Positions 5,386-44,099 of a stretch of DNA of 64,000 nt are shown here, piece by piece. Position 1 is the stretch's first letter; every line of letters starts with the position of its first letter. The stretch covers positions 807,457-871,456 of the forward strand of contig MU054831.1 in assembly GCA_013239625.1 (NCBI GenBank), written 5' to 3'. Both the position numbers and the translations under genes were made by a program. Origin of the DNA: Lama guanicoe. Lineage: Eukaryota. The notes under the pieces are model-generated. The model searched no databases. It was not told the DNA's origin and saw only the letters and a program-made list of their open reading frames with translations.

Positions 5386-5723
5386 NNNNNNNNNNNNNNN
5401 NNNNNNNNNNNNNNNNNNNNNNNNNNNNNNNNNNNNNNNNNNNNNNNNNNNNNNNNNNNNNNNNNNNNNNNNNNNNNNNNNNNNNNNNNNNNNNNNNNNN
5501 NNNNNNNNNNNNNNNNNNNNNNNNNNNNNNNNNNNNNNNNNNNNNNNNNNNNNNNNNNNNNNNNNNNNNNNNNNNNNNNNNNNNNNNNNNNNNNNNNNNN
5601 NNNNNNNNNNNNNNNNNNNNNNNNNNNNNNNNNNNNNNNNNNNNNNNNNNNNNNNNNNNNNNNNNNNNNNNNNNNNNNNNNNNNNNNNNNNNNNNNNNNN
5701 NNNNNNNNNNNNNNNNNNNNNNN
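5386..5723. other. Assembly gap (338 N)
   Basis: Run of N in sequence. Confidence 1.
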
Positions 5724-36240: not shown

Positions 36241-36288
36241 ACGTCCGCGGGGACCCTGCCTGCAACGTCCGCGGGGACCCTGCCTGCA
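36241..36288 (+). repeat. Perfect 24-bp tandem duplication
   Basis: ACGTCCGCGGGGACCCTGCCTGCA x2. Confidence 0.95.
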
Positions 36289-36382
36289 GCGCCCGCACAG
36301 CCCTGGACTCAGCCGGTGGGCTGAGCTCCAAGTGGGCCTGGTGGACACGGGAGGAAGGTGCCCACAGCGCTCTGAGGGGTGA

Positions 36383-36775: not shown

Positions 36776-37246
<471 letters not shown>

Positions 37247-37564
37247 TAGGGCTCCGAGTCCTGGTGACATCGGGCAGTGATGGCTGGGGCGGGCAGAAAT
37301 CCTCTGCCTTCTGGTGGCTAATGACATAGTCCGTCCTCTGGGGGACGCCACAGTGGGGGTCCCTGAGCCCCTAGCCCGTGGTGCCCTGGGCCCAGGAGGC
37401 AGCCTCCTGTCCTCCGGCTTTGCCCTGCTCCTCCCCGAGCACGCGGTGGCCCTGGACGTGTGAGGACGTGTGACCCAGCCCGGGTCTCCTCTTTCGCTGC
37501 TTCGTCCCTGGTGCTCCCCCCGCTGGTGCCCCAGCCCCGCCCGCCCCAGCCCCAGGGGAGCTGA

Positions 37565-38039: not shown

Positions 38040-38082
38040 GTCCAAGCTCTCCAGAAGGAGGTCTGCCCAGATGAGGGTCTGA
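38040..38082 (+). CDS. KIF1A: KIF1A terminal coding exon
   Basis: gcag|GTCCAAG...GTCTGA; SKLSRRRSAQMRV*, the recalled KIF1A C-terminus. Confidence 0.97.
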
Positions 38083-41020
38083 GTGGAGCCCTCCAGGGAC
38101 AGCCAGCAGGCCCGGCCCCACCCCTGTCTTCCTCGTGTTGTCCCCCCACCCAGCCCTGCCCCGCCCGACAGCCGGTGTGCCCCTTGCCCTGGGGACGGCG
38201 CGCTGGGCCCCACGAGCCACCTCTGGCCAGGGACCTGCACACGACCTGTTGCGCTCCCAGCAGAGGCCGCGTCTGCTGTCCTTTCTTTCAGAAGGCACCC
38301 CGGGTGGGAAGAGCTGGGAGAACCCCAACAGTCGGAGGGCACGGTCCCGGGGCGTCGATGCCGTTCTAATATTTTTTTAAGCATAGACAGACTTATAGTT
38401 AATACACCTTAGCTAGTGACGTTGGAACAGTCCAGTCAGAAATTAACTACAAGACTGTGATCTATTTATAAGCATTTATTTCTAACGCCTTCCCATAGAC
38501 GTGTAGGGTTCAGCTGGACCCACCCCAAGTCGTTCCCACGCGCACTTCCCCAGCCTCTTAGGGACGGGCAGGGCGGGGCAGCCGCCTCGGAAGGCCACGG
38601 TGAGGAGGCGCCTGGACGGGCCGGCGCCTCCTGGTTGGCACCAAGGGGGTGCTCCTGCCGGGCCAGAGCTGAGGCTTCTCCCCAGCTGCAGATGGGGCCG
38701 CCCGGTCCTGCGGGGGGTGTGTGTGTGTGCGCGCGCGTGCGCCCGCCAGGGAGCAGATGTCTGAAGTCCGAGCAGTGTAGAGGGTGGTGCGTGTTACTTC
38801 TAGCAGGACGCAGGGTCCACGTCTCACCTGGGCGCGTGTGGGAGGGGAGGCAGACAGGTGCCTGGCTGTGGCGCCGTCCTTGTGGGGTCCAGGAGGCAGA
38901 AGGGTCAGGATTCCACTGGCCTATGTCGTGTGTCCAGGCCAGCTGGGCGCAGGGGCTGTTTACAGGGGGTCCAGGTGGGCCAGGCCGCGAGGGGCTTTTG
39001 GTGCAGCGTCTCCAGCTGCTGTGAGATGTGGGGTGACCTCCAAGTTGCTCCAGGAAGGAAACCGCTGACCTCCCCTCTTGGTCCCAGGAGAGGAGAGTTT
39101 CTGTGGGTCCGGTGAGAAGATGCAAGGGGCTCAGGGGAGGGTGGCCAGCACTGAGGTCGTCTGTCATCAAGGGGGATTTCTCCTCCTGTGTCTGAGAGTG
39201 TCGCCTTGTCTTGTTCTGACTTCTCGTGCCGACAGCCGCTTCGTCCCCTCTGCAGACCCCGCGTCTGATGGTTGCCCAGGATGAGGCAGGTGTCAGGCTG
39301 GGCCGAGTCTGGTTCGTGTCCTGCCCAGGCCGTGAACCTTTCAGAGGAACCACGGGCCTGGGGTCTTCAGTGACCTGCTCCCGCACCCAGAGGCACACAC
39401 GGCCTCTTTTTAGCTCGAAGGAAAACAGCAGCCACACCACGAGACCCGTCCTCCCCACGGCCCCCAAGAGCAGATGAGGGCTCATGTCCTGGACTAAAAT
39501 CAAACGTTGTCTGGAAACCAGGAGGCCTGTGCTGCCCGCAAGGTGCTCCTCCGGGGGTAGAGGCTGAGCCGCAGAGAGCTGGGGTGACAGCACAGTCGGG
39601 AAGGAGCACTTCCTCTGGCTTGTTGAAGGCCTTGAGGGCAGGGAGGAGGGACGGGTCAGGTGAGCTCTTCTAGCGTGAGTCGTGAGTCGGTTCTGAGAGC
39701 CCCGCCTTCCCTCAGGGAGACTGGAGGTTCAGGGCCCCTGCTGTGGCCCACTCAGGCCAACCAGCCTGAGGCCACGGCCTCGGGGGAGAGGAGTCCGAGG
39801 CCCTCTCGCCCAGGGTGCAGGTGTCTGGGGCCAGCCAACCCGCAGGGCACCTGCTGAGTCGGGCAAGGCCGAGGGAAGGGGGTCCGCGGGAGGATTTCTG
39901 GGAGTCGCCCCGAATTCAGGAGCCTCCACAGCCATGGAGGCCCCGGGGCCGTTCCATCGTGGCCTGGTGCCATCTTGGCAGGGACTAAGAGCCAGGTGTG
40001 GCCCACCTGATGACCCCATCTTTCATCACTCCTCCTCTCAGGCCCGCTCCGGAGAGGGGTCCTGGATCAGAGTCCAGACACCCGGGGCTGCTGGGGAGAG
40101 AATTCCGATATGAATTGGGAAGGCTGCTCTCTCATGCCTGGTGTCACGTCAGCCCTGGGGAAGTGGTTTGGGACTCAGTTCCCACATCTGTGATGTAGGA
40201 GGCTGGTCTGGAGGCCCCTGCGGGCCCAAGGGTCATGGAGTGCGGATAAGGAAGGCAGGCCTGGCTGGGGGCAGAGAGGAAGACCCGGGAGGCAGTTCAG
40301 ACTGTTCTGTGTTAAGATGCTGCTCAGGCTGCAGCCTTATTTTGTTAGAGGGACGGCCGTTCTCACCCCGCCGGAGAGGGCTCTCTGTCCCCTCCAGGGT
40401 GGGGTGAGCTCCTTCCGCTGTGAGAGGAGCCCCAGGGAGGGAGATGCTGGGTCCCAGGGCAGCTGGTGCCCAGGGGTGGGTGTGGAGAGGCTCATAAGTT
40501 CAAGGTCTCCCTGCTCTGGTTCCCTGACACGGCGTGCACGCGCGCGTGCACACACACACACACACCTCCTGCCAGGGGAGGTGGCCCCCACTCAATCCTG
40601 GTCCCCCCTTGGCACTTCTGAGGCGGGCGTGGCAAGGTGCTCAGAGAGGATCCCTAAACGTGGCTGGAGCAGCAGGCGTGAGCAGGGCGCCACGCTGGCT
40701 CTCCATCAGCACCCCCCAGCAGGGGCCCAGAGGCGCCCTCCTTTGCCCCTGGGGCCGGGCCAGGCCTCCTCCCGGCGACAAGAGGCTGCAGCTTCTCCCA
40801 GGCCCGTGCTTCCCATGCCAGCCGTCCCGAGTTCCCCTGTGGCTTGTACATACGTGGTTGTGTGGCACACCCCAGCCCCTGCACTGTGACCGCCACCCGA
40901 CGTAGCGACTCCCGCTCCCAGTGTCCAAAACCCGCGTGTTAGGCTCTAGGCCCCTGTGCGTGCGTGTGCGCTTCAGGCTCTGTCCAGTTACGAAATAAAC
41001 ATGGCTCTTTACGCAGCACC
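38083..41020 (+). other. KIF1A: KIF1A 3'UTR (~2.9 kb; end approximate)
   Basis: Runs from the stop codon to the first AATAAA seen downstream (40994), which is followed by a GU/U-rich element; L1 sequence begins ~300 nt later. Confidence 0.8.
40994..40999 (+). terminator. KIF1A polyadenylation signal
   Basis: AATAAA with downstream GGCTTTATTTGTGCTCTGGGTGTTTG. Confidence 0.8.
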
Positions 41021-41299: not shown

Positions 41300-43600
41300 G
41301 TCATTTCATGTATCAGCTTTACTCCATACCAAAACCAGACAAAGATGCTACAAGAAAATAAAACTGCAGTCCAGTATTCTTCATCAACATAGAAACAAGC
41401 ATCCTCAGTAACATTTTACCAAATTGGATCTAATAGTGTGTAAAAAGGTTAATACCTCATGACCAGATTTGGTTTATCCCAGGAATGCAAGGTTGGTTCA
41501 AAAATCAATGTAATTCACTAAATTAAACTAATAAGAGAAAAATCATGTTATTGTTTCTATGGATGTAGGAAAAACATTAACAGAAGTCCCAAATCCATGG
41601 CTAATCAAAACTTTTAATAGAAGACCACTTCCTTAATCTGATAAAGGATGTCTACAATGAATCTATAGCTAACATCATACTTAATGGCAGAAAGTGGGTG
41701 CTTAGCCCTTAAGACCCAGAGCAAGACAAGCTCACCCCTGCCGTCTGTCACCCCTCCTCAACGTGGTGCTGGAGGTTCTAACCCGAGCAACGAGGCGAAG
41801 CAAAGAGAGCGACGGCCCCAGACCAGAGCGGAAGAAAAGCAGAGCTGCGTCGGTAGCAAGTCTAGAATATACCCCAAAGCTACTAGAATTAACTGAGTTA
41901 ATACCAGAGCAATATACAAACGCTAATTTCACCTCTATACACTAGCAATAAACAGTTGAAAATCTGAGTTTAAAAAACTGCCATTTATAATGGCAAAATG
42001 TGAACTACGTAGGTAAAAGTCAAAAAATAAGAGGCGTCAACATGCTGAAAGTTACAAACACGGATAAGAGAAATCAAAGAAGACCTACGTGAAACGAGGA
42101 GCTATGTCATGTTCGTGACCGGGAGGTTCGGCATTTGTTAAGATGACCTCCCTCCCCAGACTGACCTGTAGATTCAGCATGACCTCAGTCGAGCGTCCTG
42201 ACGTATCAGCTACCTGATTCTAAAAGTTACGTGAAAAATAAAGGACCTAGAAATGCTAGGACAAACTTGAAACTGAAGAATAAAGTCGGAAAAATCACAA
42301 TACCCAGTTTAAAATTACTAAAAAGCTACAGCGATCAGGACAGTGTGGGGTGGCGAAGGGACAGTGTGGATCAACCAAGAGAGAATCCAGAAACAGACCC
42401 ACACAAGTACAGCCAACTGGTTTTTTTTACAAAGGTGTAAAAGCAGCCAGTGGAGAAAGGGTGGCCTTTCCCGCAAGTAACATTGACGTGTTTTAGTTGA
42501 TATGTTAATTGATTGTTATGTTTTCATAGGTATGTTTTTAAAAATGAACATCAACCTAAACCTTACACTTTATACAAAAAGTAACTCAGAATGTTATGTA
42601 AAACCTAAATCCACACATCTTCTGGAAGACAGTAGACAAGGAAGTCCCCAAGATGAAAAGCTAGGACAAGTGTTGTCAGACGTGCCACCAAAAGCTCTGC
42701 CCACGAAAGAAAAGAAACTCAGCACTGAACTTCATTACCGTGAAAAACCCCTGCTCTGTCAAGAAAATGAAGACCAACCAGACACGGAGACACTCACAAG
42801 TCACATACCTGACGTGGGACTTGTCTCCAGGACACATTAAGAATTCTCAAAACTCGGTGGTAAGAAATCAAGCAACCAATCTGAAAATGGTAAAAGATGC
42901 CGCTACACACGTTACAAAGGTTACGATGAAAAACCACCACAAAACCCTGACAGTATCAAGTGTTGCTGAGGAGATGGAGGGACTGGAACTCTCCTCCACA
43001 GTTTGTAAAAATGCGAAAGGCACAGCTGCTCTGGAAGTGGGTTTGGGAATTTCTTGGGAAGTGAAGCGTGCACCTCCACCTGACTCAGCAGCCCCACCGC
43101 GGGACGTCTGCCCTGGAGGAATGGAAACTGCGCCGAGGGAAACTGATGTGCGTACGTTGAGAGCAGCTCTACTCATAATTGCCTCCAAATGGAAGCGATT
43201 CACGTGTCTTTCAGCAGGCGGGTGGTCAGACAGGATGTGGTCCGTCCACACCACGGAAATCTGTTTAGCAATCGAAGCATGGAACCGAAGCATGCAGAAA
43301 CTTAGGTGACTCGCAAAGGCATTACGCCGAGTGAAAGAACTAATCTGCAAAGGCTACATTCTGTGTGACTCCATTTATACAACATTCTCCGGAAGACACA
43401 GCAGTGATGGGAGAACAGAGTAGGGGATATGGTTGGGGACTGTGTTCGCGTAAGAGAGTTTTTGGGGTGATGGAACTGTTTGGCACCCTAGTAGCAGTGG
43501 TGGTGACATGAATATACACATGTTTTAAAATTCATAGACCTGTACATTGATGGAAAAAATAAGTCAATTATCACTCCATGATAATTTTAAAAATTAAAGT
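41300..43600 (+). mobile_element. Old LINE-1 (L1M-type) ORF2 RT region through 3' end, degraded
   Basis: ACCAAAACCAGACAAAGA, CATGACCAGA..TGGTTTATCCCAGGAATGCAAGGTTGGTTCAA (GFIPGMQGWF), CCAGAAACAGACCCACACAAGTACAGCCAACTG, and 3' motif GGCTACATTCTGTGTGACTCCATTTATAC; many stops and indels. Confidence 0.9.
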
Positions 43601-43624
43601 TTTTTAAAGCATCTCAAAAAAAAG

Positions 43625-43980
43625 ACAGTTTTTTAAAATGGTGTTGGAACATCCATATGGAAAAAATAAACCTCGCACCGTACCCCAAATTAATTCAAAA
43701 TGGGTCATCGATCTGCATGTGAATCCAAACCCTGTAAACTCCTGGGGGAGAAGCTTTGTGACCTTGAGGTTGTCGGAGATTTCGCAGATACGAAACAAAA
43801 CCATGACCCCTAAAAGAAAAATCAGAGAAATCAGACTTCATCAAAATGAAAATTTTCTCATTTTTGAAAACATTTAATAAAATGAACAGACAAGGCGTGG
43901 GCTGATCAGACACCAGTGTCCAGAGGGACACAGAACTCCGAAACTCTCCGACGAGACAGCACACCATCCAGTCCGAAGAA
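43625..43980 (+). mobile_element. Second L1 ORF2 C-terminal fragment
   Basis: ATGGTGTTGGAACA...AAATTAATTCAAAATGGGTCATCGATCTGCATGTGAA matches L1 ORF2 C-terminal region. Confidence 0.75.
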
Positions 43981-44099
43981 AAGGATTCTTAGAGTGGGGG
44001 GAGCAGATTAAAGAAACTTGGGAAACCTTTCATGGATTCTGATTTTTCAAAAAAGTTAAAAGCTTTAGATGACCCCTCACCTCAGATCTTAAGGCGCTT

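Follow-up and report, generated by a model that had tools for sequence, protein, structure and literature searches.

Inverted compound microsatellites in the KIF1A 3'UTR form a potential, probably incidental long-range duplex

Inverted-repeat SINEs (IRAlu-type) give rise to double-stranded RNA (dsRNA) in 3'UTRs that is edited by ADAR, and the inverted pair measures ~300 bp. Long-range pairing in 3'UTRs is also described by the STAU1 hiCLIP atlas, which reports that 3'UTR duplexes with spans of more than 100 nt are AU-rich, symmetric, and feature few bulges, that the duplexes have a median of ~20 paired bases, and that STAU1-bound duplexes, which may reach across kilobases, are associated with slower decay (PMC10164587). 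The Z-RNA formers found in ADAR1-deficient cells include GU-type simple repeats located in 3'UTRs (reviewed in PMC13313186). Hereditary spastic paraplegia and neuropathy have been linked to KIF1A, a neuronal motor gene, and compaction of its 3'UTR by a structure could affect the stability, editing, or localisation of the mRNA.

The potential helix in the KIF1A 3'UTR shares features with all three systems. As in the STAU1-bound duplexes (PMC10164587), both arms belong to one 3'UTR and are separated by a distance on the kilobase scale, and the paired bases greatly outnumber the atlas median. Unlike the STAU1 duplexes, it is built from simple repeats, features an asymmetric loop, and is G-C-rich instead of AU-rich (43 G-C, 12 A-U, and 7 G.U pairs; 69% G-C), as predicted from the sequence. 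Like the IRAlu pairs, it is an intramolecular 3'UTR inverted repeat and a possible long dsRNA, but it covers 62 bp compared with roughly 300 bp, and its arms are not oppositely oriented copies of a transposon or other dispersed repeat within the window (the whole 64-kb stretch of DNA that was analysed). The resemblance to the GU-type Z-RNA formers lies in a 26-nt GU/GC tract that pairs with a complementary 34-nt AC/GC tract, so that an alternating purine-pyrimidine duplex would result in the 3'UTR; that class is defined by antibody and Z-alpha enrichment in mouse cells, whereas the KIF1A pair is known from sequence and thermodynamic prediction. Were the helix to form in vivo, it would provide a clean example of long-range dsRNA driven by simple repeats rather than by transposons, as well as a candidate endogenous Z-RNA.

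Extent of the 3'UTR and its microsatellite tracts

The + strand was taken as the mRNA strand in an earlier sequence-only reading of this locus, and this is borne out by the PH-domain exon, by the final coding ORF, which ends at 38082 (stop codon ~38080-82), and by the position of the poly(A) signal (Table 1). The gene structure is based on single exons identified by reference, each taken on its own. No AATAAA or ATTAAA is found on the + strand between the stop codon and 40994, which agrees with the placement of both arms within one 3'UTR whose 3' end is predicted from this signal. Only the weak poly(A) variants AATACA (38401) and ACTAAA (39493) are present upstream. A 375-aa minus-strand ORF was rejected as a gene, having no Pfam match and a divergence equal to that of the other frames, and an AT-rich hairpin at 38387-38458 was rejected as a structured element (z = -0.86).

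Table 1. Coordinates of the features discussed in the text
Feature	Position	Strand	Description
PH-domain exon (Pfam PF00169)	36830-37050		upstream of the 3'UTR
KIF1A 3'UTR	38083-41015	+	~2.93 kb; stop codon to ~20 nt beyond AATAAA, 3' end predicted from the signal
Marginal outer helix, 5' side	38582-38593	+	CCGCCTCGGAAG; 12 bp including one G.U
Duplex 5' arm	38694-38760	+	microsatellite 1 with both flanks, ~20 nt each; cofold
Microsatellite 1	38717-38742	+	compound alternating purine-pyrimidine, (GT)6(GC)4GT(GC)2; 26 nt
Duplex 3' arm	40513-40588	+	microsatellite 2 with both flanks, ~20 nt each; cofold
Microsatellite 2	40532-40565	+	compound alternating purine-pyrimidine, GCGTGCAC(GC)3GTGC(AC)8; 34 nt
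Marginal outer helix, 3' side	40615-40626	+	CTTCTGAGGCGG; partner of 38582-38593
Third GT/GC alternating tract	40955-40971	+	shorter, in the orientation of tract 1; just 5' of the poly(A) signal
Poly(A) signal AATAAA	40994-40999	+	sole canonical signal of the UTR

Microsatellite 2 is the longest alternating run in the window and microsatellite 1 the second-longest, and the only two (GC)4 runs of the window are found one in each tract. The tracts are 1.8 kb apart in inverted orientation, and the reverse complement of tract 2 shares the block order of tract 1. A repeat search recovered the central inverted repeat as the matches I1-I4, which include 49 nt at 73% and 24 nt at 92%; between the tracts, the complementarity is 24 nt at 92% and 28 nt at 86%. 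Microsatellite 2 also contains a perfect 18-nt palindrome at 40534-40551. The third GT/GC tract was rejected as a competitor for the 3' arm, with a predicted pairing with tract 2 of ~0. Only the microsatellite cores match each other, and no other copy of the arm flanks is present in the window, which speaks against a transposon origin of the arms. The arms have no Rfam match, and a known RNA family was rejected. Both results fit the earlier view that neither arm is SINE-like, since neither belongs to a repeat dispersed through the window.

Pairing energies and the ensemble fold

All sequence strings quoted in the sequence-only reading are present where it placed them, and the imperfect central helix of ~65-75 nt that it described is thermodynamically possible. 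RNAcofold of 38690-38760 with 40512-40592 gave a heteroduplex of 62 intermolecular pairs with a 6-nt asymmetric internal loop and several bulges, at -115.5 kcal/mol vs -64.3 kcal/mol for the arms folded separately. The pairing of the flanks lies above both nulls: shuffling the flanks with the microsatellite cores fixed gave z = -3.6 (p ~0.0025), and swapping them for natural GC-matched sequence of the window gave z = -3.7 (p = 0.004). The helix ranks first among 8,911 pairs of 80-nt UTR windows; an unrelated pair, 39763 x 40683, comes within 8 kcal/mol of it. With RNAduplex, the full arms including the tracts reach z = -4.85, but this does not hold when the microsatellite is masked (unanchored, z = +0.27 for the outer and -0.34 for the inner pairs), so the microsatellite drives the signal.

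The central helix had been described as part of a nested helix of four to six tiers, and this larger architecture is not supported, since four of its six tiers do not exceed chance. The ensemble pair probability is 0.000 for 38550/40667, 38558/40657, and 39024/40189, and 0.015 for 38641/40612, and Smith-Waterman alignment without the microsatellite gave p = 0.05-0.46. These outer nested pairs are what is expected by chance in sequence of 64-70% G+C. The tier at 38582-93/40615-26 is marginal; it co-occurs with the core helix at an ensemble probability of 0.19 and reaches p = 0.02 in an anchored test against shuffled sequence, but p = 0.10 against the natural null.

Folding of the whole UTR favours a different arrangement. 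The minimum free energy (MFE) structure has no arm-to-arm pairs and features local hairpins instead, and the long-range helix has an ensemble probability of ~0.16-0.19, with local pairing probabilities of 0.62 for tract 1 and 0.31 for tract 2. Stacks of at least 6 bp with a span of more than 1 kb and P > 0.15 number 17, of which six belong to this helix and 11 lie elsewhere, several of the latter at P 0.4-0.8. In the folding model, each tract thus prefers its own local hairpin (38712-38747 and 40534-40551), and only a minority of the ensemble takes the long-range form.

The mismatches with G on the 5' arm and U on the 3' arm had been counted as at least four and read as a mark of selection on RNA structure. 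The count is right, with five such pairs in the cofold pair list, but the sense and antisense strands do not differ significantly in energy (z = -1.6 anchored and -0.56 unanchored) and arm 1 has a G content of 44%; the argument for selection is not supported. Additionally, the antisense strand shows flank pairing as well (z = -2.35), as expected for inverted homology at the DNA level.

The arms in a close relative and in a distant ortholog

Related sequences were found through spurious ORFs over each arm, and the matches consist of proteins only. For the close relative (Logan contigs; P0001, P0003 and P0002, P0004-7), the DNA changes were reconstructed by altering the window sequence step by step to make it encode the proteins of the relative. 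Both tracts are present despite changes in length and sequence. Nine differences were deduced in the arms, none of them compensatory, and each is neutral or destabilising (0 to +5.9 kcal/mol) except for an AC expansion. The cofold energy is ~-93 kcal/mol in the relative vs -115.5 kcal/mol here, which is within the shuffled-flank null (-96 to -99 kcal/mol), and the flank signal is gone. The nine visible changes in 152 nt are close to a background of ~5% per nt, which is our own estimate from 85-90% amino-acid identity in non-coding frames. The loss of the helix in the relative could look larger than it is through ascertainment (regression to the mean).

The distant ortholog fragment P0008 has 34-41% identity in one non-coding frame, in a single protein comparison, and comes from an 825-nt ENA contig that could be host contamination, possibly human. 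Where arm 2 would lie, it retains a tract of the AC type, and the flank and the GC block are not conserved. The presence of this tract suggests that it has outlasted a typical neutral microsatellite. Taken over these few species and from translations, the changes argue against conserved pairing of the arms.

Origin and possible roles of the pairing potential

As a sequence feature the potential helix is real, and it most likely arose as a by-product of the repeats without selection, a reading to which we assign a probability of about 0.58. Two old, fast-evolving compound microsatellites in opposite orientation, one of the GT/GC type and one of the GC/AC type, would allow the mRNA to form the 62-bp GC-rich imperfect duplex because the tracts are reverse-complementary and their flanks match over ~20 nt on either side. 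The flank match may be the remnant of a small inverted duplication. We infer that the helix is probably unselected from the preference for local hairpins, the minority share of the long-range form in the model, and the loss of pairing in the close relative; the inverted simple-repeat pair is real and probably incidental.

A selected long-range element, as proposed in the sequence-only reading, would fold the 3'UTR back, loop out ~1.75 kb, and be read by Staufen1/2 and ADAR in the control of KIF1A mRNA localisation and stability in neurons. It could draw on the 62-bp potential helix with its above-chance flank pairing and top rank in the UTR, on the ensemble probability of ~18% reached jointly with the 38582/40626 helix, on the five G.U pairs that are possible on the sense strand only, and on the binding of STAU1 to kilobase-spanning 3'UTR duplexes linked to slower decay (PMC10164587). 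This reading is nevertheless quite unlikely in view of the lack of compensatory changes among the nine in the close relative, where the flank signal is lost, the lack of conservation that the distant fragment shows for the outer flank of arm 2, the strand asymmetry that is not significant, the tiers at chance, and the local hairpins of the MFE structure. The asymmetric loop, the bulges, and the G-C content of the helix also differ from the AU-rich, symmetric long-range STAU1 duplexes, and no literature tying the KIF1A UTR to a Staufen structure was found. The tracts could instead produce an incidental but physical dsRNA, in which a Z-prone duplex present in a fraction of the transcripts is an unselected substrate for ADAR1 editing or Z-alpha binding. 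The mutual pairing of the two alternating tracts and the ensemble probability of ~0.18 agree with this, as do the reports that GU-type simple repeats are one of two classes that form Z-RNA without ADAR1 (PMC13313186) and that low-complexity repeats are strong drivers of RNA-RNA duplexes (PMC12905285). Competition from the local hairpins and the unfavourable separation of 1.8 kb make it unlikely, though.

The tracts might also act separately as putative single-stranded protein-binding sites, with their complementarity a side effect. The UG repeats would then be targets of TDP-43 or CELF-type proteins, and the CA repeats of hnRNP L-type proteins. The AC-type tract that persists in the distant fragment without its flank or GC block, and the retention of both tracts in the close relative, are consistent with such sites, but microsatellites can persist neutrally, and we regard this account as improbable. 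Equally speculative is a switch in which a ~60-bp Z-prone duplex forms in neuronal KIF1A mRNA, alternates between local hairpins and a compacted 3'UTR, and is read by ADAR1, Staufen, or Z-alpha proteins, with the tract positions maintained across mammals; it would make a simple-repeat-based structural element part of a motor-neuron disease gene.

With the by-product reading preferred, the locus mainly serves as a caution that in UTRs of 65% G+C short complementary words can be expected to line up in chains by chance, and that complementary microsatellites yield a strong, probably unselected pairing potential. Three observations count against the by-product reading: the flank complementarity is statistically real and belongs to the top-ranked duplex of the UTR, the isolated heteroduplex is favoured over the self-folds by 51 kcal/mol, and the AC-type tract persists in P0008.

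Gene setting and extent of the 3'UTR

The 3' end of KIF1A lies on the + strand of the window, in a gene model that is based on single exons by reference. The PH-domain exon is found within an ORF at 36830-37249 (Pfam PF00169, E=6.5e-6), and the terminal coding ORF stops at 38082. The earliest AATAAA/ATTAAA 3' of this stop on the + strand is at 40994, with just two weak poly(A) variants before it, AATACA at 38401 and ACTAAA at 39493. Because the stop is at 38082 and the first canonical signal is at 40994, the 3'UTR is placed at ~38083-41015, its 3' end being predicted from the poly(A) signal. The 5' arm (arm 1, 38694-38760) and the 3' arm (arm 2, 40513-40588) of the core helix are both within this predicted 3'UTR. 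The sequence-only reading had named poly(A) cleavage upstream of 40500 as telling against its nested long-range duplex, and such cleavage has no backing from the poly(A) signals.

Several further features are located in and around this region. The intron preceding the PH-domain exon holds a tandem repeat with a 24-nt unit at 36241-36296 (2.3 copies, 93% matches), and a 338-N run (an assembly gap or masked stretch) is at 5386-5723. An AT-rich island at 38370-38490, inside a UTR that is otherwise 65% G+C, features a 17-nt inverted repeat (38387-38403 / 38442-38458). Shuffled sequences fold just as well (z=-0.86), but the island could nevertheless be a conserved patch with a regulatory role. The - strand carries a 375-aa ORF at 38466-39593, antisense to the 3'UTR, with an AATAAA at its final codons and no match in a Pfam search. 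In a close relative this ORF is 221-254 aa with 85-90% identity, equal to that of other non-coding frames, and it most probably arose by chance in GC-rich DNA. Directly beyond the KIF1A poly(A) site, G+C falls sharply to 43% (41300-44000) and AATAAA motifs and A-rich runs are abundant; this region looks like interspersed repeats.

The microsatellite pair and the core helix

All complementary strings quoted in the sequence-only reading are present where it placed them, and a repeat search recovered the inverted repeat at the centre of the structure, whose two arms are separated by ~1.8 kb and are complementary at 73% over 49 nt, 86% over 28 nt, and 92% over 24 nt. The core consists of two compound alternating purine-pyrimidine microsatellites, tracts 1 and 2, which when reverse-complemented share one order of blocks, in which a GT run precedes a block with CGCGCGCGTGC. 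No other alternating run in the 64-kb window is as long as either of them, and both of its (GC)4 runs fall within them. Arm 2 has a hairpin of its own because microsatellite 2 includes an 18-nt perfect palindrome, GTGCACGCGCGCGTGCAC, at 40534-40551. This palindrome has cruciform or Z-DNA potential at the DNA level. A third, shorter alternating tract of GT/GC type (17 nt, 40955-40971) is located 23 nt upstream of the AATAAA in the orientation of tract 1 and is predicted to pair negligibly with tract 2.

The proposed structure was partly confirmed: its core helix stands up to testing, unlike the nested outer tiers. The helix of 38694-38760 with 40513-40588 features 62 intermolecular pairs (43 G-C, 12 A-U, and 7 G.U), the heteroduplex of the isolated arm fragments is 51 kcal/mol better than their separate self-folds, and the helix ranks first among 8,911 pairs of 80-nt segments of the UTR. 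Next in strength among the potential long-range duplexes is 39763-39842 with 40683-40762 (-99.6 kcal/mol by RNAduplex, 8 kcal/mol behind the core helix), which is microsatellite-free and illustrates how readily such pairs arise in this GC-rich UTR.

The unanchored and anchored tests give split answers regarding chance. Unanchored RNAduplex against dinucleotide shuffles bears out an excess for the full arms (z=-4.85), which is gone when the tracts are masked (z=+0.27 for the outer part, z=-0.34 for the inner), and Smith-Waterman alignment of arm 1 with reverse-complemented arm 2 gives p=0.002 in full and p=0.05-0.46 with the tracts removed; these tests attribute the whole signal to the microsatellite. 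In the anchored tests, however, the microsatellite cores were fixed and randomisation was confined to the flanks on either side of the arm 2 core (19 and 26 nt). The cofold was -115.5 against a null of -99.0±4.6 with both flanks shuffled (z=-3.6, p≈0.0025), with z=-3.4 for the outer flank only, z=-2.0 for the inner flank only, and z=-3.7 (p=0.004) when the flanks were swapped for natural GC-matched window sequence. The claimed 65-75-nt imperfect helix is therefore real as pairing potential.

In the whole-UTR partition function, tiers 38550/40667, 38558/40657, and 39024/40189 have a probability of 0.000 each and tier 38641/40612 one of 0.015. Tier 38582-93/40615-26 is marginal (p=0.02 shuffle-anchored, p=0.10 natural-sequence anchored), and it reaches P=0.19 in the ensemble by accompanying the core helix. 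Between the outer pairs, at 38603-38632, a 30-nt imperfect palindrome (80%, GCCTGGACGGGCCGGCGCCTCC-like) forms a strong local hairpin in every fold. The predicted minimum-energy structure of the whole 2,933-nt UTR contains no arm-to-arm pairs, and the GU/GC tract self-folds at 38712-38747. In the ensemble, local pairing has P=0.62 for tract 1 and P=0.31 for tract 2, and a coherent long-range conformer of ~81 pairs (38582-38753 with 40520-40626) makes up ~0.18. Six of the 17 long-range stacks (>1 kb) with P>0.15 are in the core helix and 11 are elsewhere, several of the latter reaching 0.4-0.8; predicted long-range pairing is therefore generic for this GC-rich UTR. Rfam gave no match.

Comparison with relatives

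The comparative evidence is thin and indirect, consisting of protein translations from one close relative and one distant fragment. Relatives were searched with spurious ORFs that happen to overlie each arm. The close relative was seen in Logan contigs of 2.3-3.9 kb, as conceptual proteins P0001 and P0003 at arm 2 and P0002 and P0004-P0007 at arm 1, with 85-90% identity in non-coding frames. P0001 and P0007 are each on a contig of 2,848 nt and therefore probably on one and the same, which, if shared, would place both arms in one molecule of the relative. Both tracts are retained, and the DNA changes were inferred by editing the window until its translations matched the relative's proteins.

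Microsatellites of the window and changes in the close relative (each change inferred from translation)
Feature	Position	Composition or change
Microsatellite 1	38717-38742	(GT)6(GC)4GT(GC)2
Microsatellite 2	40532-40565	GCGTGCAC(GC)3GTGC(AC)8
Relative change	38699	C>A
Relative change	38711	lost
Relative change	38733	G>A
Relative change	after 38747	A inserted
Relative change	38755	A>G
Relative change	40531	G>T
Relative change	40548	G>A
Relative change		AC run +10 nt with CGC interruption
Relative change	about 40573-76	4 nt lost

The AC expansion excepted, each change on its own either leaves the helix energy unaltered or weakens it (0 to +5.9 kcal/mol), and there is no compensation among the nine. 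Combined, they give a helix of ~-93 kcal/mol, a value inside the null obtained with shuffled flanks (-96 to -99). The closest available relative thus lacks some of the extra flank pairing seen in the window, a pattern that resembles regression to the mean following ascertainment. Nine visible events per 152 nt approximate the background divergence of about 5% per nt, a figure that we estimated ourselves from the non-coding frames and their 85-90% identity in amino acids.

An exhaustive HMMER search added one distant fragment, P0008 (170 aa, E=8e-7), from an 825-nt ENA contig for which human contamination is possible. It is colinear across ~150 residues, up to a CTYVVV motif close to the poly(A) signal, and reads ...SLTDNAHTRTHTHTHTRAAA... 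at arm 2. The GC block is on the opposite side of its AC-type tract, and the outer flank, the one that pairs in the window, differs and is shorter. The AC-type alternating tract at the arm 2 position is old. In each of fourteen small runs under a second organism label, the share of the UTR's sampled words present is exactly 0.23, the value expected of a relative ~5% diverged; these runs may come from the species that also gave the Logan contigs of P0001-P0007.

Readings of the pairing potential

The evidence best supports two inverted alternating-repeat tracts that are old and change rapidly, perhaps with the remnant of a small inverted duplication; on this reading their pairing potential is real but incidental. 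A selected Staufen/ADAR element, as originally proposed, is less likely. That proposal drew on G in the 5' arm opposite U in the 3' arm, and five such pairs were counted, which do not demonstrate RNA-level selection: arm 1 is 44% G, flank pairing on the antisense strand is likewise beyond chance (z=-2.35), and the sense-minus-antisense difference is insignificant (z=-1.6 anchored, -0.56 against random window pairs). The G.U data fit DNA-level inverted homology equally well. The original interpretation is partly supported overall: the potential to pair is borne out, but neither selection nor function is supported. STAU1 long-range 3'UTR duplexes can span kilobases and are AU-rich and symmetric (PMC10164587), whereas the KIF1A helix is GC-rich and interrupted. 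No paper on a KIF1A 3'UTR duplex was found in the literature collection searched.

The arms may also form physically real, unselected dsRNA, which would be Z-prone because of its purine/pyrimidine alternation; this is favoured by the report that, in cells deficient in ADAR1, GU-type simple repeats make up one class of sequences forming Z-RNA (PMC13313186). Low-complexity repeats have been described more generally as drivers of RNA-RNA duplexes (PMC12905285). Additionally, the UG and CA runs could be separate putative single-strand protein sites.
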